A DNA stretch of 64,000 nt from Epithemia pelagica (lineage: Eukaryota; Protista; Bacillariophyta). This document shows, one piece after another, positions 1 to 33,600 of this stretch. The notes below the pieces were generated by a model. That model had not been told where the DNA came from. It saw only the letters and a list, made by a program, of their open reading frames with translations, and made no database searches. A program made the translations under genes and the position numbers. Where the stretch lies: positions 2,728,001-2,792,000 of the forward strand of contig OX337231.1 of the NCBI GenBank assembly GCA_946965045.2, given 5' to 3'. Positions within the stretch are counted from its first letter, which is position 1. Every line of letters starts with the position of its first letter.

Positions 1-3000
1 ATTGTTGCACTTACCAGAAGCATGTGAGAGGAGTCCAGTGAGTGTACGAAGTTGGGCGGAAAGGCTGTTACTTGACGCTGTCGATGGATGGGATTGTCAT
101 CTGGGGTCTCTCGCAGTGCGACAGTTTGGCGAAGCGTCACAACGGTAGAATCTTTTTCGCGGCGATAAGGCTGGAACGCGGGTAAACCAATGGGTGAAAT
201 CCACGCCACAGGATATCCATGTTCCGATAGAAGACGGGCACAAGAGGTCAACCAGTTCATTGTCCCTCGCGCTCCTTGAAACAAATCGCCCATGACCTCC
301 ATGGTTGTTTTCGCTAGGTAACCACAAGCTTGGAAGATTTCTTTGTCCATGGCGTCTATGTCTTTCCCTTCTTCTTCGAGCTTTTCTTCAATCTTCTCTT
401 GGATTTGTGTTCGCGCCCCGATGTACGTGACTCCATATACACTGGTCATTACGGTTCGTTTCACGACACCACGATCAATCTTTCCATTCACGAGCTTTGC
501 TGCGTTGTTCTTGTTTAGTTCTTTTTGTTGGTCCTTTGATAGTTTTGATGGATCATTTACGTCAAAATCAAGCGATCGTTGAGCCTCCTCCGATACACGT
601 TTTATAACTTCATGCATCACTCCAATATATACATCTTGCGGCTTATCTGTTGCGCAGAGATTGACCGCCTTCCCCCCAACAACGTCGCGTCCAAGAGCCG
701 CATAGTGTTGCAAGCCGTTACAGGAGCCGTCCATGTGAACAGGCAATGAGCACATGTAGGATTCGGGATCACCGGAGTCGATTGCGTTAATGATCTCTGT
801 ACATGTCGCAAGTCCTTGGAATGGATCATCAAGTCCCATCCACCATCTCTCACCGCCAAATGGATCTTCCGCTGATTCTCGAACCTTAGCAATATTCTCT
901 TCAGTAAAAGCAGCACGTTCGTCGAACGTTACCTTGTCTTTTCCTCCCAAGTTTGCCAGATGAACCTTTAACCAGTAAAGCCCTTTCTTGCCCAATGGCT
1001 TTGCAGAAGCAAACGCAAGCATTCCTCTACAAAGGTCGGAGCCAACGTTGGACAAATGAGGTGGAACAGGGTAGGCTCGGCCTCGGAAGTCAACATTGTA
1101 CGGAAAGAAGATTTTGTCAAACTTTTCGAATTTTTCCGCTTGGTCAAGTTTCAGAATGGCAGAGCATCGCAGACTGTGCAAATCTCTATTTTTCTGTTGA
1201 AATCGACGATATTTTGCAAGTTCTTCTGTGTATCGCCTCAGGTTCTCAGCATGAGCCTTGAACTCAGGACTGTCTCGTTCTACGAATCCATCAATCTCTG
1301 GTCGGGTCGGTTTTTCCGGTAGGTCGAAATTTGTTTGTGTCGGGATATCACCAAGAGAAATGTTGTCGTCCCAACAACGCCTCGCAACTTCCAAAATCTT
1401 TGAGTTAATTTTCCATGGTACAGCACCCAGAACATTCAGGCCATCGAGAAGGGTGCTGAGATCCGAGTTGTCCAAAAGCTCACGCTGCATCTTACAGCCA
1501 TGAAAACGCATCAATTCAGTTTCAAGCAACAAGTACCCTCCCTCTGAAGCACTGGTCCATCTTGCTGGAGGTACCACCATTGGTTTATATCTCACAGATT
1601 CCCATGATATCCACTCAAGATCGTCTTTTGTAACGAGGTTGGCAAATGCCTCATTGACCGACACATATCCTTGCTTTTTCAATTGCTTGACCCATCGAAG
1701 TTCATGTTTGAAAGCAGGTTCGTCTTTTCCCTCCACCTTTACTGTTGTATTTTCAAGAAGTACATGTAATAGGGCCGTGCCTACCTGTATCTTTCGTTTG
1801 TCGGGCCAGCTGTCGGATTCTTCGAGCAAAAGTCGTGTCTTCCGTAAAGCATTTCGAAGGGCTGCTTCGTTCTTATGATTCACGCCAGGATCGTACTTGA
1901 TCATGTCTTTGAGAAAGTTTTCGAGGTTCGACCGGGCGTATGCTCTGTGTGCATTGATGGTTTTTGCTTGGTTTGTATCAGTGCTTTGGGGTTGGTCGTT
2001 GTCGTCCGTGTGGATGTTCTCCTCATCATCATCGCCGTCCGCATCAAACCCTAAATCTTTCTTTCTCTGTTTCTTCTCTAACATCTGTTGGTGTAAAAGC
2101 TTCTCAACGAGAACTTCTTCCTCCATCGCGGCCCCCAAACGTTTCGTTAGTTTGGCAAAGGTGACGCCATTATACTTTTCTCTCAGGCACATAACAAGAG
2201 CTTCCTTGGCTGTAATCACGGCCAGCTTTGACGGTGACAAGGCGCAGAGATAAGGGCCAAAGCAAGTTTCCGATCTCTCCATTTCACCTCTTGTTTTGGT
2301 GAGGTATTTCTGTTGCATTTTAGCAAATTCCGATTCTAGGATTGGGAACCATTTGACAACTTGGGCCTGGACCATTGGCATACTGCCCAAATCATCCCTT
2401 GATCGGGTCTTGTTCATAACGTCATTCAATTTTCTGGCACTTTCGTAATACGATTCGCACTCTAGCCATCTTTGATAGTTCTCTAGATCAGTGGTGTCTG
2501 GTTCAACTTCATTTTCAAAGTTCTTCACGAGCTCTGCCATTGACTTTTTCTCCGGAACAGCAGTTTCTCCGCTTGTTGTCTCCTCGACTTGCTCCATGTT
2601 CTCCATTTCTTGTTCCTCTTCCTCCTGCACTATATCGGATCCACCAAGCGCGTAGGTTGGGTCAATTGGATAGTCGTCCACCCATGATTCTTCCGGTGGT
2701 GGAACAACTTGTGGCGGTACCTCACTGGCTGTCGTTTGGCTGTATCGAAAATCAACCCTCTCATGGTAGTCCAAACTGTTGTCCAGGTTGTTGTGTACGG
2801 CAGAGGAGGCATAGGGATCCACTCTCAGGGCCGGATAGCTGCTTCGGGATGGTACGGTGAGATGCAGATTGCGGGAGTTACTGTTCATCACGGTTCTCGG
2901 TCTTCGCGTCGAAGGTGCGGGGGTGGTGGGAAAGCCATGAGTGCACGTTGTGCTAAATGTGGTAGTCGTTGTTGTCGTCGTCGGGCAGATGGCGGAAGAC

Positions 3001-3083
3001 TCGCTCTTGCGCAGTTGCTCATGGAGTGCGTGTATCCTTCCTCTTCGTGCAAGTATTCTTCTTCGCAACAGGGAGTTCATCAT
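1..3083 (-). CDS. RPOT: Phage-type (T7/T3-like) single-subunit DNA-directed RNA polymerase, probably mitochondrial; 3' end runs off the window
   Basis: Manual translation from ATG 3083 gives an open 3069-nt exon (15-3083). It contains YNVDFRGRAYP, motif A HMDGSCNGLQHYAAL, motif B RGVVKRTVMTSVYGVT and AFPPNFVHSLDSSHM, followed by a GTAAGT donor at 14. The N-terminus MMNSLLRRRILARRGR looks like a mitochondrial presequence. It is absent from the ORF track, probably because no stop falls inside the window. Confidence 0.95.
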   Translation of the reverse strand, partial: MMNSLLRRRILARRGRIHALHEQLRKSESSAICPTTTTTTTTFSTTCTHGFPTTPAPSTRRPRTVMNSNSRNLHLTVPSRSSYPALRVDPYASSAVHNNLDNSLDYHERVDFRYSQTTASEVPPQVVPPPEESWVDDYPIDPTYALGGSDIVQEEEEQEMENMEQVEETTSGETAVPEKKSMAELVKNFENEVEPDTTDLENYQRWLECESYYESARKLNDVMNKTRSRDDLGSMPMVQAQVVKWFPILESEFAKMQQKYLTKTRGEMERSETCFGPYLCALSPSKLAVITAKEALVMCLREKYNGVTFAKLTKRLGAAMEEEVLVEKLLHQQMLEKKQRKKDLGFDADGDDDEENIHTDDNDQPQSTDTNQAKTINAHRAYARSNLENFLKDMIKYDPGVNHKNEAALRNALRKTRLLLEESDSWPDKRKIQVGTALLHVLLENTTVKVEGKDEPAFKHELRWVKQLKKQGYVSVNEAFANLVTKDDLEWISWESVRYKPMVVPPARWTSASEGGYLLLETELMRFHGCKMQRELLDNSDLSTLLDGLNVLGAVPWKINSKILEVARRCWDDNISLGDIPTQTNFDLPEKPTRPEIDGFVERDSPEFKAHAENLRRYTEELAKYRRFQQKNRDLHSLRCSAILKLDQAEKFEKFDKIFFPYNVDFRGRAYPVPPHLSNVGSDLCRGMLAFASAKPLGKKGLYWLKVHLANLGGKDKVTFDERAAFTEENIAKVRESAEDPFGGERWWMGLDDPFQGLATCTEIINAIDSGDPESYMCSLPVHMDGSCNGLQHYAALGRDVVGGKAVNLCATDKPQDVYIGVMHEVIKRVSEEAQRSLDFDVNDPSKLSKDQQKELNKNNAAKLVNGKIDRGVVKRTVMTSVYGVTYIGARTQIQEKIEEKLEEEGKDIDAMDKEIFQACGYLAKTTMEVMGDLFQGARGTMNWLTSCARLLSEHGYPVAWISPIGLPAFQPYRREKDSTVVTLRQTVALRETPDDNPIHRQRQVTAFPPNFVHSLDSSHMLLVSAT

Positions 3084-3471
3084 GGTTGTGTTCTTGGTCT
3101 CTGATCTTCTTCACAGCCAATCTTCACTCACCCTTGTCGGTCTCGCTCTTGGATCTTCGATTCTTTTCGGATTTTACGGCGATAGCTTAGATTTCAGAAC
3201 ATCTGTCGGTATGCGAGACCACATAGAGAATGTGGTGGCCTCCACCGAAGAAAAGCGACGCACAGACGCAAATGCGTCTGTAAGGCGTACGATATCTACG
3301 TGTATCTTTCCCATCGAACTTCATAGCGAGAATAGTTGACGCAAAATTCTCGACGAATGAGAAAATGATGAAGAAATCTGTTTGAGACGGTTGGTTCATC
3401 ATCCTGTTATATATCTCTAATCCCTCGACCACAAAGAACGCATTCAAGAAAGCAGCAAACGAAAGTGTACA

Positions 3472-4536
3472 ATGTCAGACGATGATTTGGACGAAGCAGT
3501 GATCTTCAGTGGAAGCTCCAGCAAATCCGAAGAAGATCCAACCGCAGAAGAGGAGGAAGATGCCACCGCCGCCGAGGCCCAGGATGAGGATGGAACAACG
3601 ACTGAGCCTCGCTTTGCTCAAACAGAATCATTGGGGCCTGGACCAAATCGCTTTGCTGCAAAAGGCGAACGTCCAATCAGCGAACAGATTGCTTCTCTCT
3701 CGCCGGAGGAACGTGAATGTTACAACAGTTTAAGAATACGCTGGAAAGCCTTGCACCCGGATCGACCCTATTCGGATGAAATGTACCTTAGATTTGCCAG
3801 ATGCAGTCCTGGAAAGACCAAATTCAACGAAAAGACGGCGTGGAGAGTCATGAACCGATTTGATCGACGCTACCTGGTGTTAACTGCCTCCAGACTCGAA
3901 TCGCAACTTCTAAGTAAGGTACGGCTTGGTGTTTTTTGGGGTAGTTGCATTTTGCATGCAAACCAGAAACATCTGAAAATCTGCTTATTCTGCCTTGCTC
4001 AGACTCTGTTTCCAGTTCCAGGTCTCTCCACGAAAGAAGGCCATGACGTGTTTTATATGCGCGCTTCGCGATACTTCCCCCGCCAAACATCCACCAGAGC
4101 GATCATTGACAATCTCGCTTACTGTATGACAACCATGGTGGAAAAGGAAAAAGCGTGCGCCGAGGGTATCGCCTTTTTGGCGTATATGAATGACTGGAAA
4201 ATGAAGAACTTTGCTCCGGATTACTTTGTCCAATTCATGAGGACCTTGCAAGGACGTATTCCGGTCCGAGTTCGACTTTTCTTGATTGTTAACCCACCAA
4301 AATTCTTTGACCGCGTATGGATGATCATCAAACCTTTGCTGTTAAAAGAATTTCAAAATAAGGTACGCATGGTCCAAGAAGAGAACCTTGGTGACTTCTT
4401 GATGGACACGTATACAGATTTCCTGCCGGATGACATGGCCAGTGGCACTCAGCCTGCCGATTTAATGGTGAGCGACTTTGTGACGTATAGGAAACATGTG
4501 GAAGGCAACAACCGACTCATTGGACTACAAGATTAA
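3472..4536 (+). CDS. CRAL-TRIO/Sec14-like lipid-binding domain protein
   Basis: Motifs DEMYLRFARC, GHDVFYMRASRYFP and LQGRIPVRVRLFLIVNPPKFFDRVWMIIKPLL. Probable in-frame 84-nt intron at 3919-4002 (GTACGG...CTCAG). Confidence 0.75.
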   Translation: MSDDDLDEAVIFSGSSSKSEEDPTAEEEEDATAAEAQDEDGTTTEPRFAQTESLGPGPNRFAAKGERPISEQIASLSPEERECYNSLRIRWKALHPDRPYSDEMYLRFARCSPGKTKFNEKTAWRVMNRFDRRYLVLTASRLESQLLSKVRLGVFWGSCILHANQKHLKICLFCLAQTLFPVPGLSTKEGHDVFYMRASRYFPRQTSTRAIIDNLAYCMTTMVEKEKACAEGIAFLAYMNDWKMKNFAPDYFVQFMRTLQGRIPVRVRLFLIVNPPKFFDRVWMIIKPLLLKEFQNKVRMVQEENLGDFLMDTYTDFLPDDMASGTQPADLMVSDFVTYRKHVEGNNRLIGLQD

Positions 4537-5880: not shown

Positions 5881-7229
5881 AACTGTCTCTATTCGAGGCC
5901 TAGAAATGGCACCTTGCCGAATGGTTCATGGACATGGAACTCTTTTCTGGTTGGCGGTGATGGAATAATCCGTAATGGAGTTATGGAGAAGAAAAAGATA
6001 CCATCTGTGGAAGTGGGGGGGGCTCCTCAGGTGTGGTGTCCCTGTTTGGGGGCGAACATGCATCAAGACTCCATCTACATCTACGGCGCTGTTACCCAAC
6101 AAATTGCGCATTCCACAAATGGACGAGTCGCATTTTCGTTTGTAATTTGTCCGATTTCACACCCCATCGTTCGTTCCTAGCGTTGAATTTCCTAACGAGT
6201 TATCATTTCCTATCGTTTTGTTTTCGAAAAAAAATTTATGTGTCCGTCTCAGGTATCGTCCTCATACGCCTCCTCCATGATGCCGTTGATGACGGCCTTC
6301 TGCAGATACATCGTACAAATAGTCATATCGACAATGGCAATGGTAGGACCGCACCAATTCATGACTTTTCCATTGAAAACTCTCCATCCAAAATTTGACA
6401 CCATCGTTCAGAAATCGTCCCCCGTCTCTCATTTTTGTCCCCCGAAGGCATATTTGCGACCCTTCTGCGATTATGTCCCATTAGTCGATTTGTCGAATGG
6501 CGTAGGTCAATATGTCGGATTTGTGTCAGACACATCGCACATCTTGTCAAAATTGGCCATTTTACGCCCCATTTGTCTTCTACAAATTACAAATGAATTT
6601 TCATGAGTCAAAATGCATACTACAAATTGACTATTACACGTGTAAGCCCGACATGCCTTCATTAAGACCATATTTTTGTCTATATTTTCATTTAATACTT
6701 ATTTCAAACATAAAACCAAGCTGGGAATTCTCATATAAACTCATTCTTCATTGTACGAATCTTCATTCTTCCGATAAAGATTTCCTTATTTCACCCCGAT
6801 ATGAATTCATTGGTCCCAGACTACAATAGTGATTATCTGTACATTTTCTAAATTAATGCCCATACTTCTCTACGTAACCATATCCATCTATGAATGAATG
6901 AAATATGGCCAACTACTCTCATTTCTTGTGTAGTCCTTTCAATATCCACTATATATGAGGATAATATGTTTATATATCGTGATTGACAGCGCTGTCACAC
7001 CGTCACACCATGGCAGGCTTCATTTTTCCCAACACACACCTCTCCTGATTACTGTTACAACCAAAACAACACTCTCTCTCTTTTCCTTGCTGAAAGCACT
7101 CCGTACCTATACTTCCCATTCTTCTTGCTCTATCTTCTGAGATTGCTAAGGTATGAGTATATTCCTTCCCTTTTCTCCTTTTCTGTGCTATTTCTCATTT
7201 ATCATGCCGTTTGCATCTGTCAACTTTGT

Positions 7230-7439
7230 CTGTTTCTACTATCCTGTTGTTGGAATTCCTTTCCTTTCAAGAAGTTGACACGTCATTCTTTTGGTAGGAT
7301 ACGACAGTGTGGTAGCTCTGCCATTGAATTACGTTCTGTTTCTACTTTCCTGTTGGTGGAATTCGTTTCCTTTCAAGTTGATACGTAATTCTGTTGGTGG
7401 GAGACGACAGTGTGGTAGCTCTGCCGCAGAATTACGTTC
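7230..7439. repeat. Imperfect tandem duplication, unit about 106 bp, 2 copies
   Basis: CTGTTTCTACT(A/T)TCCTGTTG...ACGACAGTGTGGTAGCTCTGCC...GAATTACGTTC occurs at 7230-7335 and 7336-7439; copy 2 lacks 3 bp. Confidence 0.9.
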
Positions 7440-7442
7440 CTC

Positions 7443-9846
7443 ATGCCAAGGAAAAAAAGGAAACATATTGCCTCAAGAAACTGACAAATCTCCAAATCGT
7501 CCCAAGTGTCCGACATATTGCCTCAAGAAACTGACAAATCGCCCCAAGTGTCCGACATATTGCCTCAAGAAACAGACAAATCGCCCAAAGTGTCCGACGA
7601 ATCGCCCTTAGAATCTCACGGATTGTCTCATGAGTCCAACTTATTGCCTAGAGCGTCAGACAAATCGACCCAGGCGTCCAACGTATTGCCTCAGAAGTCC
7701 GACATATCACCCCAAGTGTCCGGCATATCGCCTCAAAAAACAGACAAATCGCCCCAAATGTCTGACAAATGGCCTCAAGAAACAGACAAATTGGCCCAAA
7801 TGTCTGACAAGTTACCACTTAGTTCGGACAAATCGCCCCAAGTTTCTAACAAATTGCTTCAAGAATCAGACAAAACACCCAAAGTGATCGACAAATTGCC
7901 CCAGATGTCGGACAAACTGCACCAAGTGTCCAACGTATTGCCTCAAGAGTCGGACAAATTGCCTTGTGAGTCCAACAAATTGCCTCCTAAGTCGGACAAA
8001 TTGACCAAAGTGTTGGGCAAGTCGTCTCAAGATCACAACAAAGTGGTGTCTGGAGAAGAGATTGTTATCATGCCTTCACCACAGCCTTCTGATCGACGGC
8101 ATCTGAAGACAATTCCACTGGCCAATGCGTACCAACAAATTATTGCATCAGGTAGTTTTGTCGGTGCAAATAGGAAAGACAAATTCATTGTTTGTCACCT
8201 TACTTGCAAAGATTGTTCTTGTGGTCAATCGACCAAAGTACTTCAAGTCCCATCGGGTCAATGTCTCCAGCATTACTTTTCAGATCGTTCTCAAAAGTGG
8301 CTACCGCATTCGTTGGTACACAGCTTCGGCACATTGGTAGAGCACTACTTTCACAACAGGACTATACTGTTCCATAATTCAACAGCAAACTATTCGAAAG
8401 CAGATCTTTCAGAAATGAGAAAGTGGAAGATGAAGACATATAATTTGAAAGATCAAGATCCCTACGTTAAAGAGATTATTTCTCTTGGTTTTGGCAAAAG
8501 CCATTATGTTGTAATCCACATCGATATCGACAAGAAAAAAATTGATGTCTATGATGGAATGTTGGGGGGAAACGATCTTTCACTGTGGAACAAGAGTGCT
8601 CTGGCGACTTTATGGTATTACGAATTCCTACAGCAAGCAGACAGTAATGTGCGTCCAGTCCATTGCTTGCAGACAGATGACAGCCACTCATCGTCTGCCT
8701 TTTGGACGATTGCATATGATACAATAAATAACGAGGGTAGGCTGCTTAGGGCACGAGTGCCGTTACAGCTGTTGGCGCACGAGTGCATGCAGCTGTCCAA
8801 AAGGATTTGCACTCCTGTGGAGTCCTTGCTTCTTTGAGTATTATGTATTTAATGAGGCCTGTATTGAAAAATCTCTCGAAAAGGAAAGATCTACATCCAC
8901 CAACACGTTCCGAAGATACTTGGCGATCCACAGTCGGAAACATATTCGAGAAAATAATCATCAAAGCATGGAAAAATCTCAATTCTGCATTACGGCAGAA
9001 GTTCCATGAGGAATATACATCGGTCGGTCAGACGTCGTTGAGAGAGCAATATTTGAATTATCTATCTGGTTTCATGGACACAGAAAAAACTGAAGAACCA
9101 ACACGTCGCTCGCAAAGAAACCAATCCAAGAAGTAAGTTGTTCTCCTTCCATTCCATTTGCTCTATAGTAATACTCAGATGTACGTGGATGTAATTGTAG
9201 TTTTCTTATGATAGACGATACGACAGAAAGGCAATATACTCGATATGAAAATATATCCACTCGCCAGGCGGAACAACGAAGACAAGCGACCAAAATGATA
9301 AGGATGAACCAGCAAGCTGGATTCCGAGTTTCCGTTGGAGACGCTGTAGCCCTGTTTCCTGACCCTCGAGATCGTGCAAACCAGAGCCGCCATGGAATAC
9401 ACTGCCTTGTTTTTGCGGTCTCTCACAGTTTGCAACCATCTGTTAGATTGGTACTGCCTGAAGGGATTATAGGAGATAAACGAACAAGAACACCAACATG
9501 GTATGCACGGGACACGTACAGTGTTATTCATTCTTCTTCACCAATGGGCAAAGCACGTCGAGATTTACAGAAACAGATTATTGACAAAACATTTGATCCC
9601 ACTAAAATGGCTTCTTTGTCGATCCGTGACGCTCATCGAATCGCAAATAGTCAGGAAGGACAGTTGAAAACGAAATGACGTACTACTAAGAGTTATGGCA
9701 CTGGATGTTCTTGTAAAGCAAGCAGTTCTCAATGTACGACGAACAACTGTGGGTGCAGGAAGAAAAATCAGGCTTGTGACGCAAGCTGCAAATGTAGTGA
9801 AAACAGGTGTATGAATCGGAATTTCCATCAACTTCCAGGGGTTTGA
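7443..9846 (+). pseudogene. Repeat - Ulp1/C48-like cysteine protease - SH3-like region - CXC (9-Cys) protein, disrupted
   Basis: Possible start MPRKKRK at 7443 with a TGA at 7482. Protease motifs SHYVV (His), YDG (Asp) and VQKDLHSCG (Gln/Cys). A frame change near 8737-8786 is explained by a 32-nt GT-AG intron or a 26-bp duplication. Intron 9133-9200 (GTAAGT...TGTAG) joins in frame to RQATKM...VSVGDAV. An in-frame TGA at 9676 precedes CSC-x6-C-x4-CGC-x6-C-x3-CKC-x4-CMN, which ends at TGA 9846. Confidence 0.65.
7464..8040 (+). repeat. 42-bp tandem repeat array, about 13 progressively degenerate copies (14-aa ILPQETDKSPQVSD units)
   Basis: Consensus CATATTGCCTCAAGAAACTGACAAATCGCCCCAAGTGTCCGA; the first copies are nearly identical and they decay towards the 3' end. 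Confidence 0.9.
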
Positions 9847-10946
9847 GTCAAGGCAGGTAGGGACAGCCCAAAAAACCAGCCAACAGTGTGGGGTCCCCGT
9901 TTGGCACTCGTAAGGGACTCTAAGGAACGGACACATTTATGAACACTTGTGCAATGACGGATAACACGTCCATCAAATAGTATAGAAACTCCGTGGGAGA
10001 GTCGAATTACCAAACCTGAGTAAGTTGTCGAGTCAATTTTTATCGAAACATTGGGCATGACAAAGTACCAATCGCGTGCAGATCCAAGCTCTGTCTCTGA
10101 AAATAGAACAACTCCAACACTAGCATCGTTGATGTCAATGTGTGAAGAGTTCATAAGATCGACACTGATGGCAATGTTACTGCTGCAACCGTTGGCGTCA
10201 CCACCCAAGCCGTCTGGGATTTGGAGCCCTCCAATGGTCCGTAAACTTTTCAACAAGGAAAGTGTTCCAGGAAAATTATTTGATATGAATTCCGCTGCCA
10301 AATGACACGTTTCTCGAACTCTCTCAATCAAAAGACCATCGCTGTCATGGAAGGAAATGCTGTTGATGCATCTCTTAAAACGATGTAACATTTGTCCATA
10401 AGCGCTCATAACACCATTGTCACCAGTCTTTTGTCGACAATTTCCTCCTTTAGAGAAACTTTTGGATGATGTGTATAACCGAGACGCCACATTTAAAGTC
10501 TTGTATAACTGGTGTTCCTGTGGAATCAAGCATACCACAATGTTTGATTGGGAAATCGGAAGCTTATTTCCGTCAAGGATGGACGCTTGAAAACAGGCAT
10601 TATTGCCAGCTGTAGATGGATCGTAGATGTAAGCTGAAGGAGGAATGTTTTGGTAGAGCGCACCTGAAACATACCGTCGACAACCAACCTTATTGGAAGG
10701 AGATGAGTCAAAAAGGGACCGGTACAAGGAACGCTGTGCTTGTAAATCCTTAGTGGGTATGTTGGACCCAATTTGATCGGGTGGTAAGAGTGGAGAATCC
10801 GGATCATCGTCGTTGAAATGTAGACAGTGATAGACACGAGGCAAAGAAGCTTTTCTCGGTAAAAAGTCAATCGACCAAACATGGTTGATTTTTTTTATGA
10901 AGCCACCCCGTGCAGGCAAACCTGTTTCTGTACAAGTCGCAACCAA
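9828..10946 (-). CDS. TET/JBP-like 2OG-Fe(II) dioxygenase (candidate nucleic-acid base-modifying enzyme)
   Basis: GDNGVMSAYG (G-M-x-x-G strand), NIAISVDLMNSSHIDINDAS (HxD plus downstream N/D), YFVMP and IRLSHGVSILFDGRVIRHCTS (distal His). Order and spacing match the TET/JBP double-stranded beta-helix. The true 5' end probably lies in the upstream ORF. Confidence 0.7.
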   Translation of the reverse strand: MVATCTETGLPARGGFIKKINHVWSIDFLPRKASLPRVYHCLHFNDDDPDSPLLPPDQIGSNIPTKDLQAQRSLYRSLFDSSPSNKVGCRRYVSGALYQNIPPSAYIYDPSTAGNNACFQASILDGNKLPISQSNIVVCLIPQEHQLYKTLNVASRLYTSSKSFSKGGNCRQKTGDNGVMSAYGQMLHRFKRCINSISFHDSDGLLIERVRETCHLAAEFISNNFPGTLSLLKSLRTIGGLQIPDGLGGDANGCSSNIAISVDLMNSSHIDINDASVGVVLFSETELGSARDWYFVMPNVSIKIDSTTYSGLVIRLSHGVSILFDGRVIRHCTSVHKCVRSLESLTSAKRGPHTVGWFFGLSLPALTQTPGS

Positions 10947-11626
10947 GAGGTAGGCAAAGAAGTCATGGGAGACTTGGTGATAGACGACCCAATTCCAAAG
11001 GAAACGTCACCAGTAGGGATGAAGCTGTCGGCAACAAAGGCCTTTGTCCAAAAGCAAGCAAAGTAGGGGGAAATTAGTATGACCGTACGGAAAATCGCAT
11101 CGTTCTCATCGTTGCAAAGCAAACGGGATGTACGCGTTTGGTAGATTGTTTCGTAATAACGTGATTCGTTTGAAATTCTTGGCTTCTTGTGAGTCCGGGA
11201 CAAGATACAGTCAACCAAGTAACATCCATGTAGTTCTTGTGTTAATTGCTTTGGTACTGCGTCTCTTACAATCAAATTAGCTTCTTGAAGACAAGAAGCA
11301 TGTTGTGCTTGGAGAGCACGAAACCCATCAATGATACATCTTGTAAGAACGGGAATATCGGGAACCGATGTATCGATGGGCAACGGAAAGATAGAAGTAA
11401 TAGAACGCATTGAATGGCGTATGAAATCTTCTTGGTACGTAGGGGGGATGCACAAGGAGTACATCTCAGTCAGAAGCAATTTGAAGTTTGGGGTATCGAA
11501 ACATCCAAGTTGATGCTTCGTTGCGTTAGGAAATGATCGAAGAACATGAATGACACCAGGTGGGCGGTTAGATGTAACGCCGGTTGTCTTATGTTTGGCA
11601 ATACGGTTGACTCTGATTGTCGTCAT
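10895..11626 (-). CDS. Probable N-terminal part of the TET/JBP-like gene; weak chromodomain-like segment
   Basis: ORF from ATG 11626 (MTTIRVNR) overlaps the dioxygenase ORF by 52 nt next to an 8-A run. It contains YLVDCILSR...YFACFWTKAFVADSFIP. The splice or frameshift junction is not resolved. Confidence 0.4.
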   Translation of the reverse strand: MTTIRVNRIAKHKTTGVTSNRPPGVIHVLRSFPNATKHQLGCFDTPNFKLLLTEMYSLCIPPTYQEDFIRHSMRSITSIFPLPIDTSVPDIPVLTRCIIDGFRALQAQHASCLQEANLIVRDAVPKQLTQELHGCYLVDCILSRTHKKPRISNESRYYETIYQTRTSRLLCNDENDAIFRTVILISPYFACFWTKAFVADSFIPTGDVSFGIGSSITKSPMTSLPTSWLRLVQKQVCLHGVAS

Positions 11627-11979
11627 CGTGTTTGTCGTGTTGGGATGATTTCCTAAAGGCAATGGAGGTGCGATGTGAGTCCAAAAAATGGACGGACAGA
11701 TAGGGAGTATAATGCGAAAGAGGAGTATTAAAGTCATTTGTGATTTGTGGGAACGGATTGACCAACGCCCCAGGGTGGGTCAATTTGTATAGTGCATATT
11801 GACCCCGTGAGTCAATATGTCTCTTGGGGCTATTTGTTGGGTAACAGCGCCACTTCAGGAACAAAGAGCAATGCCAATCGCCATGTCATTAGGTTGAGAA
11901 GTTGCTTGTTGCTTCCCACACAGACCAAAGAAAAGACTTGAACACAGGAACGAAGAAGGCTAGTCTTCTTTTTGACATA

Positions 11980-16600: not shown

Positions 16601-18139
16601 ATGAGAGTTCCATGTTTTGCTGGATATACCAGACGAGTCGTTGTGCCGCGGGATAGCCATGGTATCATTGCACGAGTCACCCAGCCTTGGGCTGTCAATG
16701 AAAGATATTTTCGTCCTGTTGCGGCAATCGCACCCTTCACGTCTCAATCAGGACGTGGTGGAAGCAAAACATCGTCCTCGTTGCCGTCGACCGCGAAACC
16801 AACAACAGACTCTGACGACCGAACGTCATCCTGCAACTCGACCAAGACAACCAACCATTTGACAGAAGAGCGTGACGAACAGAATCGAGAATCAAAGAAA
16901 GCCAATGAAGAAAGCGTCCAATCAGGCGATGCTGGAGACGAAATGAAGGGCAACCAAACTCCAACGACAAAGAATTCAAGGGCACCGTCCTTGTTTCCTC
17001 GTCACCTTCGACGTTTAATTGTGCGACGAAATGACATTTATTTCAACAGCAAAAACAAGAACTCTTCGACATCCCAAACAGATCTTCAGCAATTGGTGGG
17101 AACCTACAAGCGAACACCAGTGGCGCAATCCGAAATCCTCGATTCATTTGGTCAGCTCATCCTCAAGCCAGCATCAGTATCGTCAAAGTCGTTTCGTCAT
17201 TACTTACATCAAGAAGACAAGTTTGATAACAGCAACAACGCGGGTGACACTCTCGAGTCGAGACCATTGGGGGTGAAGAATGAGTTCTTTGTCGGAAAAA
17301 CGCAATTTTCAACAAATTCTCTTCCTTTACTGAATGTTGCAGTCATGCTTGACCCTACCAAGTATGTCAAGTCTATGGATGCGAGTATGGTTCGTTCCGG
17401 AACAGAAGCAGCTCGTCGTATTCTTCGGGGACGCAAGGAATGGTATCGAACGGTTCGAAAGCATGCAGAGCGAGGCCTCGACCCTTCGTCAATCCCACTC
17501 TGGCCAAACAATCTCTCTTATCCCACGGACAGTATGAACAGAAGGGCCTCGTATCGGTTGACAGGACACGGGGTTCCCCGAGAGCTACTCCAGGATCATA
17601 TTGACTATGCGGGTGCTCTTCTTTCACAGAACCAAGCGACTTCTGTGACCTTAGCGTCAAGAGACTCGATCCGAGTGCGACGACCTGATGGGAGTCATCA
17701 CAACGTACAGGTCCCGGAAAATTCTCATTCTCTTGATTTGTACATGGCCGTCATGGAACGCATCTCCAAGACACTTTCAATCGTTTTACATCGTGAACCA
17801 TACTTTACCCAAAGACCTCACAGTCCAACGCCCGCATCTGAAGGCGAACCTTTGGAACAACCCGAAAGTGGGATTGATCCGAACGGTGACAATGATTCCC
17901 ATGCAGCAACAACAGATCGACCGTCATCAGGACCCTCAGATATGCCCATGTGGCACGTTGAGTTCACCCGAGGATGGGTTGTTGCGGAACCGACAGTGAA
18001 CCAGCTGGAACCGGTCGTTGAATGGGTTTGGCCAAGGCAAATCTTTATACGACTGCGAGGACGACCAAAGAACAATCCCCGAATGGCAGTTGCTCTAGCC
18101 TACGACGCAACCTTTCCAACGGTTGGAAAGAGATTGTAG
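16601..18139 (+). CDS. Hypothetical protein; weak resemblance to a degenerate IPNS-type 2OG-Fe oxygenase fold
   Basis: Long intronless ORF. YRLTGHGVPRELL and YMAVMERISKTL recall DIOX_N-type segments, but no HxD...H was found. Confidence 0.5.
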   Translation: MRVPCFAGYTRRVVVPRDSHGIIARVTQPWAVNERYFRPVAAIAPFTSQSGRGGSKTSSSLPSTAKPTTDSDDRTSSCNSTKTTNHLTEERDEQNRESKKANEESVQSGDAGDEMKGNQTPTTKNSRAPSLFPRHLRRLIVRRNDIYFNSKNKNSSTSQTDLQQLVGTYKRTPVAQSEILDSFGQLILKPASVSSKSFRHYLHQEDKFDNSNNAGDTLESRPLGVKNEFFVGKTQFSTNSLPLLNVAVMLDPTKYVKSMDASMVRSGTEAARRILRGRKEWYRTVRKHAERGLDPSSIPLWPNNLSYPTDSMNRRASYRLTGHGVPRELLQDHIDYAGALLSQNQATSVTLASRDSIRVRRPDGSHHNVQVPENSHSLDLYMAVMERISKTLSIVLHREPYFTQRPHSPTPASEGEPLEQPESGIDPNGDNDSHAATTDRPSSGPSDMPMWHVEFTRGWVVAEPTVNQLEPVVEWVWPRQIFIRLRGRPKNNPRMAVALAYDATFPTVGKRL

Positions 18140-18205
18140 TGATAATTTAATAAACAAACATTCAATTGGCAACCAGGCCAATGCGCATCGTCTTCAGTGG
18201 TTAAA

Positions 18206-21200
18206 TCAAGACGAAGCGAGAATCCGTGCGCTCTTAATGCCTTCCTCGCTCATCTCCATTCGATCAAAGTGATCTTGGAGAGACTGAACCATCCGATCGC
18301 GAGCAGAAAGGACCACCTCGCGAAATTCATTATCCGAAATATCACCATTTTCAATCGCGGCATCGACAAGATTGTACAAAAGATCGATCGTCTCGTAAGG
18401 CACGAAATCCATGTCACCTTTCTCTGGTAAACGCATTGCCGGTGAATTTGGTGCTGCCTCCGCAGAATCCAGGACAGAGGAAACAAGTTCGAAGGCAAAG
18501 TGGTACATTCCAGCCATCATGTATATGTTCAAAAGAGCACAAGGGTCTCCCAGGTACCCCACAAACCCCTTTTGTGGGCGCCTTGCGAACAAACCAGGAG
18601 TCCAATGGCACGGAAAGCTTCCATACTTTAACAGAGAAACCAGCCACTCTGGAAGTGCTGCAACTCTGTGGTCTACAACAAGGCAATCTGCAACTCTTGC
18701 TGCAAAAGGGGTCTCTGCCGTTGTATATGTTTTTGTAGCACTCTCTAACAACGCAATGGAGGCAACACGGATCGACGCAGCCTGAGGGTCTTCGTCGCGT
18801 CTGGGTGAGGGACCAAGCAGTACTGGCGGCTTACTTGATTCGCCAACAGCATCATAAGCAGCAAGAATCTGACTAAGGGAGGGGGTCGACCCTCCCCTGA
18901 CTCCCAAGGTCAGAGGAACGAGATGATCGCATAGAAAGCAGCTCAATGCGGTCAGAAAAAGGTCGCTACCTGGCAAAGATTCTTTCATTTGCAATGTCAA
19001 GATCAATCCTTGGTCGTAATGTCCGGCCTTGAGTAGTTCCATGATCAGCAATTGGATTCCCGTTCCATTTTCGTCTCTCTCCGACAACAGGAGCTGGACA
19101 AGCTTTTGATCAAACACATCATCAATCCAAAGTCTACGGACACCCGTCGCAACTATCAAACGAGTTCGCAAGTCTTGGCAGTCATTGTAACGATCCAAGC
19201 GATACTCATACAAGTTCTCTCCAGTGGCTTCTTTCTCTTCTTCGGAACGCTCCTCGTCTTGGTTGTCCACGCCGTCACGAGGACGCTTTATGATTCCGGA
19301 GGCTTCATCGGCATTCGACACAGTGAATGGTACCAGCGATAGTTTCTCGTACTCCCCAGATATAATGAATTGAGACTCTGGGTCCTCCACTAAGCACAGC
19401 GACTCATGAGCACCAGCTGCAGCCAGAACCAAGTCATCCAAAATGAGGCGAGTTCGTTTAAAAACAGTCGCACTATCCATGGGCAGTCCATTTGATGAAG
19501 AAAGCAATTTCGTCGAGTCGAGAGCAAGGGCGGATGTCGCGTTAACGTATCTTAATTCCATGGCTTGGGCAGCCTTCCTCAACTCATTCCGTGATAAATG
19601 AAGCGCGTACAAGGCGCCTTGGTAGTCGGAGATAGAATCTGATCCACTTGCAAGGTGGGTGTACCAATCACGATGTCCTGCTTTTCCCAAGATGTCCACA
19701 GCAACACTGTAGAGATCCATCCCACGCGCATTGTCCACTTCCTCTGTGTCCTCACCATACAGAGAACACATAGAAACAAGGCGACATAATGCTCCGGAAT
19801 CAACCATCGCAGTCACTAATCTTTGAAGATGATCCCGCCTTTGCAGTCGATTGGGGTTATATTTACATGCGATCAGCGCTTTCCCCCAGTCATTTGCTTC
19901 AAGTGATTTATAGAACAGCAAAGAGAGAAGTTTTTTGTATTCGGTGCTCCCAGACAAGAACTCCATAGAATACTGCTCTTGTAATGACGGAATCGCTTCA
20001 CCGATACTTGTCACCAGTCTCGACCTCGCCACAACATGCTGCCGGAGCTTATTCATTCTTCGATAGCTATCCTCGAGATTATGAGCATCGAAGCATAATA
20101 TATCATAAGCTCGATCTTCCATTATGCTTGCTGTCACTTCAGGATAATTGCTCGCCAACACCAGCAGGCATTCTGCCGTTGTTTCGAGCACCTCGCGTCT
20201 AGTTGACGTTTCCTGGTTCGACAATGAAGCCAACAAAAACGGAGACAGGAGTGTCAAGACAAGTTTTGGTTGCTCCATATGGGCACCCTTCGAAACCGAT
20301 GGGAGCATGAAACTGAGTTCTTGAGAAAGAGGGTCTTGCTCCACACCAGTAGGGCTAACGGAATCAAACAATCGGAACAAAGCCGTTTCCACCCGTTGGT
20401 ATAAAACCCGCGAATATGCCGGCAAGTTAGTAAATTCGTTCTCATTGTCTTGAACAAATCCTTGATTCACATTTGCGAGAAAACAATCAAGCATGGTAGT
20501 AACATTACCCATGCCCGCTGATAGCAAAATGGACTCTGACTGCATGCTGTCGAAGCTTGGCCTCTTTTTGGGAGGTAATCCATCTTGTTCAGTGTCAGTG
20601 GTCGCAACGCCTCTTGGTTGACTCAAACAAGGAACATGATGGCAAGAAGCCACCAAAAGCGAACCCGTCCGCAAGTATCCTAACCATGCTGACTCTCGAA
20701 TTGCAACAGGCGCATATAGTCCACAGAGCACGAGGTATCGCCCAAGGAACAGTTGCTTTACCTCATCCAATCTTCGTGCACAAAGGCTTGCTGCCGTGAG
20801 TCGCTCCTGCACGGACATGAATCGCGATGAAGACGGTTCCATCTCTATTTCCTCTTTATCTTGTTGACTCATGCTTGCACCCAATGACCCCCAATTTACT
20901 TGTTGCACATTGAAGACCCAGTCTTCAACACTGCTACTATTCAACGAACGTTGAAGATGATCAATTTCATTTTGAGACATGACAGCATCCCGGATACCTT
21001 CAGTCAGGAGACTCAACTCACTCGCAACGGCTGCGGCTGTGGGAGTCATGTCCATTGTACAATTGGAAAAGGCCAACATTATTCGTTGTTCTTGAGCATA
21101 CAACTGACTGGCCAAGTCACCTTGTGTTGCAATCTTCTCCAATATATGGGCAGCAACACGATCCAGAAGGTTACCAGACAAAGAAGGTTTGACTGGATTT

Positions 21201-28226: not shown

Positions 28227-28400
28227 TGAATAAATCCCGCCAACAGGTCGCATATTGGCGGATACATGGTCGCATATTGGCGAATATGCATCGCCTACAT
28301 ATGCTGCTACGCATCTAGTTTTCTAGTCATAATTTTGGTCTAGCCACTTGTTGCACACCGTATACACCGTGTTGTAGCGTGTAGTGGCAAGATTTATACA
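28227..28400 (+). repeat. 5' LTR (174 bp)
   Basis: TGAATAAATCCC...GATTTATACA; contains GGTCGCATATTGGCG twice, at 28246 and 28268. Confidence 0.97.
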
Positions 28401-28415
28401 GTTTATCAGACCCAA
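28401..28415 (+). other. Primer-binding site, non-CCA (half-tRNA type)
   Basis: GTTTATCAGACCCA directly follows the LTR. Its reverse complement TGGGT-CTGATAA-AC reads as a tRNA anticodon arm. Confidence 0.55.
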
Positions 28416-28423
28416 ACGCTGCA

Positions 28424-28487
28424 GCCGCAGTAGTTTAGTTGGTTTATGTACGCTGTTGACATGGAAGGTCTGGGGTTCGAATCCCCA
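28424..28487 (+). promoter_or_regulatory. tRNA-derived segment with Pol III A-box and B-box in the retrotransposon leader
   Basis: A-box-like TAGTTTAGTTGG (28431-28442), anticodon-loop-like TTGACAT (28456-28462) and a perfect T-arm TGGGG-TTCGAAT-CCCCA (28471-28487), at near-tRNA spacing. The acceptor, D and anticodon stems do not pair. Confidence 0.6.
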
Positions 28488-29118
28488 TGATTTATCGGAC
28501 GACCGGCCGTTGGACCCTGTAACGGGACCCACCTCTCCGATGGTAGATCAAAATGACCAGATAGTGCATCGGCGTCCGACTGTCCCCTAACCATATTCCA
28601 ATTCTAACCAGGTCTATGCTGCCTCGGATATGCTAAATGCTAAGGCGCTCTATGTGCACCATGTGAGAACTCTGTTGAGTTTCGCTCTTTGCCTTTTGCC
28701 CGTACTGGTAGCGGCTGATCACCGCTTGGGAGTGTTCGCGCTAAGCTACTCGTCACGGTATGCTTGCGGCACTACTTATAGTTCACACTCGTGATGTGTG
28801 ACCCATGGCACTCTCCCACGTGACGGGGAGCACTCGCTTAAGTGAGTGATTGTTTTGGTAATCTTTTCTCCATACATGAAAATATAGATACCTCCTTTTG
28901 CACTGTGCCGACGCACACGTCCTAAGTATTTGTTCTCTGCCGACTGCAGCGCAAACGCAAGTCGACACTACTTGTGCACCTTAATTCCAGGTAGAATCGC
29001 GAAATCTGCGATCTGCATCACCTTTTGGCAATGCCTCCACACTTCTGTGTTTTTTGCCTGTGTTTTGCTCTGAACCTCTCCTGCTTCTGGCTCTCTTGCT
29101 TTCCTTTTGCCTTCCACC

Positions 29119-30672
29119 ATGTCTTCATCCACTGCCCCTGAAAATCCCAAGGAAGATTTCAAGGCTGCCGTTAAACGCTGTGGATACAATGATGCCACCG
29201 TTACCTACATCATTGAGCAGGGTTTTGATGATGCTCAATCGTTCATGACTGTTGCAGTCCATCAAGTGCCGTCGATGTTGAAGATGATGGCAAAGACCCC
29301 TCCAGAGAACGGGGCCTTTCCCTTCAGTGCTAACCTGCAGCTCCACGGCTTCGGAATGTGGCTCGAATACCGTTCGTCTCGTGGTCAGGCTCTTAAAGTC
29401 TCACTTTTCTCTGATCCGCCCCTGATCAAGAAATGGACCAAACGTACCCAGGAACTGTTTGCACTCAACAAGGAAGTTGCCTCCGATGAACTGACCCCAC
29501 CGAAAGAGTTGACTTCGTTTACTCAGTGGGAGGTGTTTAACGATGCCTTGCTCACGTTCCTCGCACAGCATCGCAATCCCACAACGGGTGTCCCTCTGAC
29601 ATACATCCTTCGTGAAACTAAGCCTGTCGGTTCTGAAGCAAGGAATGCTGCCTACGATACTATCGATGACGATTTGATTGCTACTACTATCCTGCAAGGT
29701 GATCAGTATGCCCTTGACAATCAACGCGTCTTCACACTGATGAAACCTTTTCTTGTTGGCGGACCTGGCCTGACGTTCATCAAGCCACACCAAAAGAAGA
29801 AGGACGGCCGTGAGGCGTATCTTGCGTTGACTCGCCAAGCTACTGGAACAGCAGCTGTCACCATCCGCAAGAAAGAAGCATACGCTGCTATTGCCGACGC
29901 GAAGTTTACAGGCCGCGGTCGTTTCTCGTATCAACAATATGTTCACCGCCATCAGAAAGCTCATAATACGTTGGCTGAACTTGATGAACCCGTTGCCGAA
30001 ACCAAAAAGGTAACCGATTTCCTCAAAGGTATATCGGATCCCTCTTTGGCGGCGGGAAAGACGGTCGTCAACGGTGACGCAGCAAAGCTTTCTGATTTTG
30101 AAGCATGCCAGCAGTATTTTGGCACGTTGATTGCTGCATCCCGTACCGACAAGACCAATGACGAGAATCGAAAGATTGCTGGTGTGGGTACGACTAAGAC
30201 TAGTGGAAAGAAGAATGGTCGTAACAAGCAGAATAAAAAGAAGACACGTCATTACAGTTTGGATGAATGGCGCAAGCTCTCTGATGAAGAGAAGGCCGAA
30301 ATCCTCCGTGCCCGTAAAGAACAGAAAGACAAAGAACAGAACGACGCTAATGGAAAGCGCAAGGCCGGAGCCGTGCGAACTGAAGATGAAAATGGCTCTC
30401 GCAAGTTGAGTAAAACTGAAACTCCAAAGTCTGATGACATGAAATTGGAGACCACTGACCTGGATGGCGACGACGCGCCGAACCATTCCGAGCCTGATCC
30501 TCCTGTTGCTGATGAACCGACTGTTCCCAAAACCTCAGCCGGAAACAGTTTCGGACGCTTTGCCCATAGTAAAAAAGGATCTACAAAGCCGCACAACCCT
30601 GATGAAACCAAGGAGCCTACAACTGCCGTTGCGAAAGCTGCCCTTGCTGATAAGGCCACAAAGCAGACCTGA
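29119..30672 (+). CDS. gag: Copia Gag
   Basis: ORF after a 718-nt leader. GVPLTYILRE, DGREAYLAL, YVHRHQKAHNTL and KVTDFLKGISDP are typical of diatom copia Gag; ends at TGA 30670-30672. Confidence 0.9.
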   Translation: MSSSTAPENPKEDFKAAVKRCGYNDATVTYIIEQGFDDAQSFMTVAVHQVPSMLKMMAKTPPENGAFPFSANLQLHGFGMWLEYRSSRGQALKVSLFSDPPLIKKWTKRTQELFALNKEVASDELTPPKELTSFTQWEVFNDALLTFLAQHRNPTTGVPLTYILRETKPVGSEARNAAYDTIDDDLIATTILQGDQYALDNQRVFTLMKPFLVGGPGLTFIKPHQKKKDGREAYLALTRQATGTAAVTIRKKEAYAAIADAKFTGRGRFSYQQYVHRHQKAHNTLAELDEPVAETKKVTDFLKGISDPSLAAGKTVVNGDAAKLSDFEACQQYFGTLIAASRTDKTNDENRKIAGVGTTKTSGKKNGRNKQNKKKTRHYSLDEWRKLSDEEKAEILRARKEQKDKEQNDANGKRKAGAVRTEDENGSRKLSKTETPKSDDMKLETTDLDGDDAPNHSEPDPPVADEPTVPKTSAGNSFGRFAHSKKGSTKPHNPDETKEPTTAVAKAALADKATKQT

Positions 30673-33600
30673 GACTGTGTGCCCAGTGATGAAATTGATA
30701 AAACGAATCTTATCCGTCCACATTTCTCACTTGTAGGCACCCCTACCTTCAGCTTAGCCTTTGCACACCGTTTATGTGCTGCCGTATCACAGTCCTATAC
30801 CACTGATCCGATTGATCTGACATGTGAAATGGACTCGCATGCTGACACTTGTTGTGTTGGTCGCAACTTTGTGAAAATCAGGGAACCTGACCGTTACATC
30901 ACTGTTTCCCCATTCTCAGAGGAATATAAACCCCTCGAGCGTATCCCCGTCACCACGACCGCCACTGTCTGGACTGATGCCCACAACAATAGTTATCTAT
31001 TGCTGTTTCACGAGTCGTTATTCTTCGGGGACCGATTGTCCCAATCATTGATTTGTCCCAATCAGCTGCGTTCAAACGGCCTCATTGTCCATGATGTGCC
31101 GCGTCAGTTTGACCCTTACAGCACACACAGCATTCGTATTCCCGATGCTGACCTGACCATTCCTCTAGAAATGTCCGGTGTTATCTCTGGCTTCGCGACC
31201 ACGAAGCCAACCCCGGAGGAGCTCCAGTCGCTCCCACGGATAGTCATGACTGCTGATTCGGTGTGGCACCCTCATTCGTCCACCTTCGCTGCCGCGGAGG
31301 AGAAAGCCAATGCATCCAATGCATCTGCTGTCCGCCAAGTTGATCCGAATTCGATTGCCGCATCCTGTGTCCCGCGATTGGTTGCTGCCGTCCGATCATA
31401 CGACGAAACCTATGGCTATTGCATGGAACTTGAGAATGACAAGGATGAACTATGCAACCGCTTAGTTGCTGCCGTTCGAGTGTCCCATCCACCGAGTGCC
31501 GAGGACACTGTGGACATTGAGGACCTTGATCCCGACGAATACTTTCTCAAAGCCGTTAAGTCTGCTTCGTCACGACCAACGAAAGCCGTAAAAGTCTTGC
31601 AATCTTCTTCTAAGACTGTACTTGATCCCCAGACCTTGTCTTCTCGATGGAATGTCGGCCTTACTAAGGCCAAGAAGACTTTACAAGTGACAACCCAGGC
31701 TGGGGTCCGAAATGTCCTTGTCCCATCCAAACGCAAGGTCCGAAAGAAAGCTCCATGGCTCAAATTCCCGAATGTCAAGGGACGATGGTTTTGCGACGAG
31801 ATGTTCTCCAAGTGCCCATCGCTTGATCTTCACACGGGTGCTTCCGTATTTACTGATGGAAAGGGCTATGATTTTGTCTATCCCTGGAAATCAAAGAAGC
31901 AACACCCTGAAGGTCTGATGTCCCTTATCCAGAATGTCGGAATTCCTCAGACGTTAATTTCTGATGGTGCGCAAGAGCTATTTCATGGACGTTCTCGTGA
32001 GATCTGTAATGAGTACCGTATCAAACAAGAAGTGACCGTCCCATACAGTCAATGGCAGAATGCCGCCGAAGCGAGCATCCGTGAGTTGAAGAAAGGTGTT
32101 ATTAGGAAGTTATGTCAAACTGGTGCACCACGACGCACATGGTCCTATGCGCTGAAGTGGGTTGCCTCTGTCCGCCAGTTAACTGCCTCTGATATCCCTG
32201 AACTTAATGGACGAACGCCATTTGAACACGTTCTTGGATCGACACCCGACATCTCTCCCATGGCTTTGTTTGATTTCTATCAACCTGTATACTATTATAC
32301 GCCGTCGCATGACTTCCCTCATGAGCGTAAATGTATTGGGCGCTGGCTTGGTCTTGCCGATGACTGTATTGATGACATGGCCTTCAACGTCTTGACAGAG
32401 AAAGGTCGAGTTATTGTCCGAAAAGATGTGTGGGCAATCCCTGACGACGATATGAAAAATCCCACAATCCGTCAACAACTGGAAGTCTATGATGGTCTTA
32501 TCAAGACTCTCCTCGTGGATACATCGCCGTCTTCCGATGAAGATGCCGCCAACGTTTCCCCTGATCCACCCGATGATTTCTTTGGAGAAGACGAAAGCGA
32601 ATCTCTCTTTCCTGCTGCTCTTGACTCCGATACACCTCTCCCTGATGCTGACAACTACACTCCGGAGGAGTTAGACAAATATCTCACAGCCGAAGTCATG
32701 CTGCCGCATGGCGGGGACCAGGCCAGAGCCAAGATCATAGGCCGCTCCAAAGATGAACATGGCCGACCAATTGGCAAACGTGATCCAAATCCAATCTTAG
32801 ACACACGTTTCTATGACGTGCTGTATCCCGATGGATCGACCGAATCTCTTGCTGCCAATCTCATTGCCGAGAACCTTTACTCTCAAGTCGACACTGAGGG
32901 CAACTCCTATGCCATTGTAAAGGATATCATTGGACATCGCAAAACCAAGGACGCTGTCCTCCGAACGGATCCGGACTGGTTGAATGGCCGTAAACGCCAT
33001 ACAACCGTTGGTTGGGAACATGAGTGTGAACTCTCCGATGGTTCTACTGTTTGGATCCCTCTCAAAGATCTCAAAAACGATTCGCCTGTACAACTAGCCG
33101 AATATGCTGTTGCGGCGGGGCTTGCCAAAGAACCGGCCTATGCCTGGTGGGTTCCACATACGTTACGCAAACGTGGTGTGATTCTTGCGAAAGTAAAATC
33201 TCGCTATTGGAAACGTACCCACAAATATGGTATTGAACTGCCCAAAACCGTTCAAGAAGCTCTTGAGATTGATCGTCGAACGGGGACTGATTTCTGGCGG
33301 AAAGCCATCGAAAAGGAGATGAAAAATGTTCGCATTGCCTTTGAATTCCGTGATGATGACAAAGTACCAATTGGATACAAACATATCCCATGTCATATGG
33401 TCTTTGATATCAAGTCTGATCTTCGCCGTAAAGCCCGACTGGTTGCCGGCGGGCATAAGACTGATCCACCGAAGGAATCCACGTACTCCAGTGTTGTATC
33501 CCGTGATAGCGTACGAATTGCATTCACTATCGCTGCCCTTAATGGCCTGGACGTGTTGGCCGGGGACGTACAAAATGCATACCTCAATGCACCAACAAAA

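Follow-up and report, generated by a model that had tools for sequence, protein, structure and literature searches.

The transposon copy and its boundaries

The window analysed here, a 64,000-nucleotide stretch of the diatom Epithemia pelagica (contig OX337231.1 of assembly GCA_946965045.2, positions 2,728,001 to 2,792,000 of the forward strand), contains a transposon copy of 5,757 bp (window positions 6090-11846) whose ends read TGT...ACA and which has a GCGC target duplication at either side. Both ends carry a perfect 15-bp terminal inverted repeat, starting TGTTAC. Between them lie two convergent genes, for a dioxygenase and for an Ulp1-like protease with a CXC tail, whose 3′ ends overlap by 19 bp (9828-9846), as described in an earlier note made from the sequence alone. 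That note had also singled out a lower-GC block between housekeeping genes: the GC content is 0.427, compared with 0.472 and 0.476 (~0.475) in the flanks, the lowest of any 5.7-kb tile in the window, and the neighbours, a gene of the RsfS family to the left and one for cytochrome b5 to the right, are ordinary. The limits originally proposed (6400-11840, ~5.4 kb) fall short of the true ends. The insertion site is a ~340-bp gap between these two divergently transcribed host genes, and the element ends 205 bp from one flanking start codon and ~130 bp from the other. No further copy of the element was found in the window. The features of the copy are as follows.

6086..6089, no strand: left target-site duplication GCGC (GACC, GATT, GAGT and GATC in sister copies)
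6090..6104, plus strand: left terminal inverted repeat, 15 bp and perfect, starting TGTTAC; identical end in sister copy L001
6105..6700, no strand: left subterminal region; the ACAAAT-core motif of the coding array recurs here at scattered places
7229..7439, plus strand: 103-bp repeat, two copies, immediately 5′ of the transposase start
7443..7462, plus strand: transposase start codon and first codons, then the 2,614-bp deletion junction
7463..8003, plus strand: 21/42-bp coding tandem array (7/14-residue linker) within the transposase polyprotein
8112..9010, plus strand: Ulp1-like (C48) protease domain of the transposase; codons for His at 8502, Asp at 8553, Cys at 8816
8725..8795, plus strand: copy-specific 71-bp stretch in place of 12 bp, inside the protease domain; frame shifted
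9133..9200, plus strand: predicted GT-AG intron of 68 nt, protease exon to C-terminal exon
9201..9846, plus strand: C-terminal exon with a conserved D-x-R-D-R domain and the CXC cysteine cluster
9676-9678, plus strand: copy-specific TTA-to-TGA stop in the C-terminal exon
9828..11737, minus strand: TET/JBP-fold dioxygenase gene (predicted fold), 636 residues in intact copies
10142 and 10136 (HxD), 10127 (Asp(+5)) and 9956 (distal His), minus strand: dioxygenase codons
11730..11831, no strand: right subterminal region, array-like motif inverted
11832..11846, minus strand: right terminal inverted repeat, ending GTAACA
11847..11850, no strand: right target-site duplication GCGC

Full-length relatives and decay of the window copy

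Homologues of the minus-strand protein (the dioxygenase) led to a sister copy, L001, of 8,348 bp and 98.8% identity, which has GACC at either side and is lodged inside a Copia-type element. Its additional 2.6 kb encode an H2C2 zinc finger and a DDE integrase core, and it is the full-length, transposase-bearing version that the earlier note had proposed to look for. Inverted pairs of 15 bp arise by chance 0-3 times per shuffle of 64 kb and hence are not rare alone; the element ends are proven because L001 aligns from first base to last and carries a different duplication. Contigs assembled from public runs show loose ends at 6089, matching the left terminus. Dioxygenase sequences of the same family (family 1) occur on 8 contigs of assembly ERZ21939226, 5 of them full or near-full length; the window most likely belongs to this assembly, as its two dioxygenase reading frames equal P0016 and P0013. 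Ends with target duplications were established in five copies of three families (GCGC, GACC, GATT, GAGT and GATC, with one mismatch in L006). Multicopy status, ends and target duplications together bear out the proposal of a mobile element, for which a single-copy block had been named as the refuting outcome. None of the three outcomes that the note had named as refuting was borne out.

The window copy is an internally deleted, non-autonomous and decaying derivative of this young 8.35-kb Ginger2-like element. A 2,614-bp deletion at 7462/7463 (1375-3988 of the full element), with a 3-bp ACA microhomology, removed the H2C2 zinc finger and DDE integrase and left the downstream part out of frame. 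The other three lesions are the replacement of 12 bp by 71 bp at 8725-8795, which breaks the Ulp1 frame, a TGA at 9676-9678 in the CXC exon and, near 10924, the loss of 1 bp, by which the dioxygenase frame is split. An intron joining the two dioxygenase open reading frames (ORFs) was ruled out, the break being a 1-bp loss relative to intact copies, as was CpG deamination as the origin of the stop, the change being TTA to TGA. The predominant form in the public run contigs lacks all four lesions, and its depth is ~3.5-4x that of the flanking contig, depth being a rough guide only. None of the three full family-1 copies read is flawless: L001 and L004 have an early transposase frameshift, and in L005 the protease His is replaced by Gln. 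L002 is an integrase-deleted copy that arose independently in another family; integrase-deleted derivatives therefore recur.

Several structures were seen in or beside these copies. For the 71-bp stretch of the window copy, no counterpart turned up in the rest of the window or the fetched loci; it contains an internal repeat and a 56-nt GT...AG interval (8737-8792). L005 holds a head-to-tail junction (18030-18377) in which a left end is fused to a 308-bp right-end segment, ~6 terminal bases being lost; a circle or a tandem insertion would give such a junction. In L003 (9041-9800), a Ginger copy harbours, ~50 bp in from its end, a nested 760-bp element bounded by 30-bp terminal inverted repeats, and in L007 (9765-21200) one of the families described here is inserted, in opposite orientation, in the transposase tail of another (GATC duplication).

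The protease is part of a Ginger-type transposase

In full copies, a single integrase-Ulp1-CXC polyprotein faces the convergent dioxygenase gene. One frame of 1,371 residues in L005 spans the integrase, the repeat linker and the protease and is followed by a predicted short intron and the CXC exon, with the splice donor at an identical place in four families (that of the window and three others). Because this frame joins integrase, linker and protease ahead of the CXC exon, the Ulp1-CXC 'gene' of the window is the back (3′) half of a transposase whose integrase was deleted; what had been taken for a second cargo gene is rather the C-terminal domain of a Ginger-type transposase. The His-Asp-Cys triad, with Gln before the Cys, is present in four families, apart from the Gln-for-His copy mentioned above. 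As for the earlier suggestion of a deSUMOylase, specificity for SUMO is only weakly indicated by the sequence matches (Pfam C48, E 0.044; yeast Ulp1, E 0.07).

The full copies encode an H2C2 and DDE integrase that is Gypsy-like, without a reverse transcriptase. Their termini read TGTTA at both ends in all families, in agreement with the TGTNR consensus, and the integrase is nearest to KRBA2-like clusters, whose integrases derive from Ginger2 (PMC3575427). With its TGT ends, its duplications of 4 bp (4-5 bp in Ginger) and an integrase that no reverse transcriptase accompanies, the element agrees with Ginger (PMC2836005). No YPYY or GPY/F motif was found in the integrase and no CCGG/CCGT target was seen among the duplications, and the targets are mostly G-N-N-C/T instead of RTATAY. 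The terminal inverted repeats, 15 bp in family 1 and shorter and imperfect in other families (~10-15 bp), lie outside the ~40-300 bp given, as a descriptive range, for Gingers (PMC2836005). The carrier is classed here as a Ginger2-like, cut-and-paste element, the reference Gingers being compared by description and not by tree; this wording is preferred because the terminal repeats miss the 40-300 bp range. Plain assignment to a class is opposed by the short repeats and the G-N-N-C/T targets, which fit neither Ginger1 nor Ginger2. A Kyakuja-Dileera-Zisupton or Plavaka carrier was ruled out, the transposase being of integrase type and the duplication 4 bp, compared with 8 bp for Zisupton.

The dioxygenase is a conserved cargo of several families

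Five families in this genome, ~50% identical to one another, share the tail-to-tail layout, with 3′ overlaps of 19-79 bp in the families where both genes were compared. Contigs from three independent metagenomes (L010, L016 and L017), too short to reach an integrase, show the same CXC tail facing a dioxygenase of 35-39% identity. The linkage of the two genes, which the earlier note had proposed from a single locus, extends in this way over five families and three metagenome contigs. The Ginger-linked enzymes all fall in one supported tree branch of 17 rows, alongside other sequences; the tree is a quick, unrooted one that was not used for the order of events, and its row L008_1_1131, labelled 'other', is a Ginger copy.

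Between families, the ratio of nonsynonymous to synonymous substitution (dN/dS) is 0.07-0.19 where computable, with synonymous sites near saturation, and the dioxygenase is under purifying selection. That the gene is a neutral passenger, or a host gene beside a transposon remnant, is accordingly a very improbable and largely refuted account: although the window copy is broken, and TET/JBP genes move passively among transposon types in fungi (PMC12730594), every complete copy has the dioxygenase within its terminal repeats, most copies of five families with ~50% identity retain an unbroken frame for it, and dN/dS is far below 1.

Members of the same enzyme family also occur in other settings. 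A distant one faces a DDE_Tnp_4 (PIF/Harbinger-like) transposase gene (L041, 2826-3752). In L008 (6466-11944 and 13089-18813), the dioxygenase stands in tandem behind a 1,003-residue RING-finger ORF, with a 5.7-kb array of ~170-bp units after it; this second type of carrier abuts a truncated Ginger copy. In L012 (3480-11540), the dioxygenase is downstream of a 1,066-residue ORF related to Plavaka-like ORFs, and a 358-residue ORF with an H-x-D motif is also present. The long ORFs beside some family members we take to be Plavaka-like; Pfam gave no match for them.

Predicted fold and substrate of the dioxygenase

A structure model built with 75 aligned relatives reached a predicted local distance difference test score (pLDDT) of 94 and a predicted template modelling score (pTM) of 0.93; a first model from 7 sequences (pLDDT 55.6) was poor and was discarded. 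Foldseek placed TET2, CMD1, CcTet and NgTET1 within its first 25 rows, ahead of any AlkB protein. A wide structural search gave Z scores of 19.4 for TET2 (root mean square deviation 3.7, 267 aligned residues), 16.1 for CMD1, 15.6 for NgTET1 and 15.3 for CcTet, whereas the best match of AlkB or prolyl-hydroxylase type, FTO, reached 11.4, leaving a gap of 4 Z units to the TET/JBP enzymes. The modelled protein is of TET/JBP fold and closer to TET than to AlkB or prolyl hydroxylases, as the earlier note had supposed, and an AlkB or prolyl-hydroxylase identity was ruled out by this ranking (at most Z 11.4). The Fe triad HxD...H shows no variation in 75/75 relatives, nor does the Asp at five positions beyond the first His; the CMD1 counterpart of this Asp reads cytosine N4 (PMC7854593). 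The enzyme family comprises 1,083 clusters at 50% identity; the closest Atlas cluster from eukaryotes consists mainly of Bacillariophyta, which makes a diatom host probable.

Each of the four best structural matches is a TET/JBP enzyme acting on 5-methylcytosine (5mC). An enzyme that instead hydroxylates thymine, as in the JBP and dinoflagellate type, or another base, with a mark that does not undo 5mC and possibly serves silencing, seems to us improbable. Dinoflagellate TET/JBP proteins do make 5-hydroxymethyluracil (5hmU), which is concentrated on repeats and linked with the silencing of these (PMC11572971), and phage Tet_JBP clusters are near neighbours of the present family. However, the dinoflagellate enzymes retain an H...R motif (PMC11572971) that this family lacks, the best solved matches point to 5mC, and self-silencing would be of little gain to the element.

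An unusual co-substrate pocket

No Arg for 2-oxoglutarate binding is conserved on the last strand (positions 614-625, in an approximate register). Thirteen residues past the HxD His, 147/153 proteins have a Trp or Phe; in CMD1, Trp358 at the same spacing occupies the place of the 2-oxoglutarate arginine and blocks 2-oxoglutarate, CMD1 using vitamin C (PMC7854593). CMD1 is also the second-best structural match and the top PDB sequence match of the core profile, albeit a weak one (E 0.12), with agreeing spacing (D+2, D+5, W+13, F+26); PDB sequence searches with longer profiles failed to identify the dioxygenase. When the vitamin C pocket of CMD1 (R244, H249, S335, T337, W358, T399, S414) is compared by spacing, the picture is mixed: agreement is seen for R, S/T(-8), W/F(+13) and T and disagreement for H249 and V342, whereas S414 could be placed on neither side.

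Non-2-oxoglutarate chemistry is possible from these sequence features. A CMD1-like enzyme on the same element, using vitamin C or another non-2-oxoglutarate co-substrate and adding a group to 5mC to give 5-glyceryl-methylcytosine (5gmC) or a new base, is a tentative alternative that overlaps the explanation favoured below. It draws on the missing Arg, the aromatic residue at His+13 and the two CMD1 matches; yet TET2 is the stronger structural match, the residue at His+13 is Phe instead of Trp in the Ginger-borne copies of this genome, and Asp and Asn hold the positions of His249 and Val342. Moreover, the conserved Arg591 and Arg594, beside the distal His, could replace the missing last-strand Arg. 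A reading of His582 and Arg594 as distal His and 2-oxoglutarate Arg, which came from the alignment tail of the core-profile match to CMD1, was set aside: the model places His582 in a turn, and His595 is invariant.

A repeat motif common to the ends and the coding array

The earlier note had seen copies of one repeat motif bracketing the block. The 7-mers of the 21/42-bp array (7463-8003) do recur in the non-coding ends of the family, 56 times against 13.3 expected (about fourfold); 0/500 resamples reach 56 and host tiles give at most 27. A GACAAAT core recurs in the arrays as well as the ends of three families. Joint variation of array and ends by family is clear only in family 1, partial in two families and absent in one. 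The ACAAAT-core motif may be a transposase binding site or a VANC-like target repeat.

The motif also bears on the view that the protein is an altered or inactive reader, which binds methylated DNA, perhaps at the ACAAAT core, and shields the element or aids target choice. Its presence in both ends and in the coding array recalls VANC target repeats (PMC5735166), and the last-strand Arg is missing as such a reader would allow. Nevertheless, the Fe triad is invariant across ~150 diverse members, which argues for catalysis, and the motif could be a mere transposase binding site; we regard a reader as unlikely.

A probable anti-silencing role

Diatom CG methylation represses young transposons (PMC9998398). 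Given the observed mobility, architecture, fold, selection and linkage of the element, the best explanation of the whole is probably that of a decaying Ginger2-like transposon whose TET/JBP-fold enzyme modifies 5mC against CG silencing. From what is known of related enzymes, the protein would flip out and modify 5mC in DNA; this would remove or mask the host CG methylation of transposons, and the family would stay active. The protease would probably trim such marks as SUMO or ubiquitin-like ones off the transposase or the chromatin close by.

Several results speak against this explanation. Structural similarity leaves the substrate unfixed, and Pfam Tet_JBP matches only 1/75 members (E 0.0033), not including the window protein. 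The elements are still CpG-depleted (observed/expected 0.75-0.91), and CpG-type transitions make up 15-16 of 35-52 changes; because such changes stay common among copies, protection from methylation would be partial at most. The stretch occurs in no RNA run. Finally, no empty allele of the insertion site was seen in the run contigs.

A broader proposal can be put forward tentatively: the family may be a large, unannotated TET/JBP clade shared by diatom-associated transposons from several superfamilies, with non-standard 2-oxoglutarate use, placing 5gmC or an undescribed base on the element's own DNA, Ginger perhaps aiming it via the motif of its ends and array.

Other features of the window

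Outside the element, positions 28227-35259 contain an element with 176-bp direct repeats (99% identical) and frames of 532 and 1,418 residues; it is probably a young Copia-type retrotransposon, part of it matching the RVT_2 region of L007. Facing inverted arrays of a 10-bp unit lie ~150 bp apart at 56016-56302, a 49-bp tandem repeat in three identical copies occupies 52897-53044, and 91-bp inverted arms (75% complementary), 1.2 kb apart at 37262-38660, mark a possible small transposon.

Comparison with known systems

The earlier note had presented the locus as a candidate for an undescribed system. However, TET-carrying DNA transposons have already been described (PMC12730594; 10.1101/2022.06.16.496473). 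They are known from 11 fungal lineages, with carriers such as Kyakuja, Dileera, Zisupton, Plavaka, hAT, Harbinger, IS3EU, EnSpm, ESTA, as well as Helitron (PMC12730594). The fungal elements resemble the present one in carrying a separate TET/JBP gene on a DNA transposon, in the proposed escape from methylation and in the movement of the gene between superfamilies. Unlike them, the present enzyme family goes unrecognised by Pfam Tet_JBP, save for 1/75 members; Ginger is not among the 11 carrier lineages, and the words Ginger, diatom and algae are absent from that report (PMC12730594). No report of a Ginger carrier of TET/JBP or of a diatom case was found in the literature searched, the papers of Iyer et al. 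lying outside its coverage.

CMD1 on the Chlamydomonas transposon DNA-1_cRei (10.1101/2022.06.16.496473; PMC7854593) is likewise an algal TET homologue on a DNA transposon, with the same core spacing and an aromatic residue at His+13. In contrast to the Ginger2-like element, DNA-1_cRei has no recognisable transposase and makes 8-bp duplications. In CMD1, Arg410 is still present but points away from the site, whereas the present enzyme family has no Arg there; identity between the two is ~11%, and several vitamin C contacts differ.

As to the carrier, TGT ends, a 4-bp duplication, H2C2 and DDE domains, a KRBA2-like integrase and the lack of GPY/F or YPYY are shared with Ginger2/Tdd and KRBA2/SCAND3 (PMC2836005; PMC3575427). 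Ginger2/Tdd nonetheless differs in its terminal repeats (45-300 bp as described, against ~10-15 bp here) and targets (RTATAY, against mostly G-N-N-C/T), and the present element adds Ulp1 and a cargo gene. Ulp1 fused C-terminal to the integrase is already described for Ginger1, together with introns in the transposase gene (PMC2836005), but here YPYY, GPY/F and the CCGG/CCGT target are lacking and the host is not an animal. By analogy, VANDAL/VANC of Arabidopsis (PMC5735166) also combines an element-encoded anti-methylation protein with family-variable tandem repeats, although VANDAL belongs to the Mutator elements and VANC is no dioxygenase.

Set beside these systems, the present element adds an integrase-type (Ginger) carrier and a diatom host to the range of transposon-borne DNA-base oxidases; in diatoms, young transposons are known to be silenced by CG methylation. 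Its large, unnamed enzyme family with a non-standard co-substrate pocket could bring to light another enzyme of the vitamin C type, the second one, or a new base in DNA, and near-identical copies with and without an intact gene or integrase in one genome provide a natural comparison of methylation.

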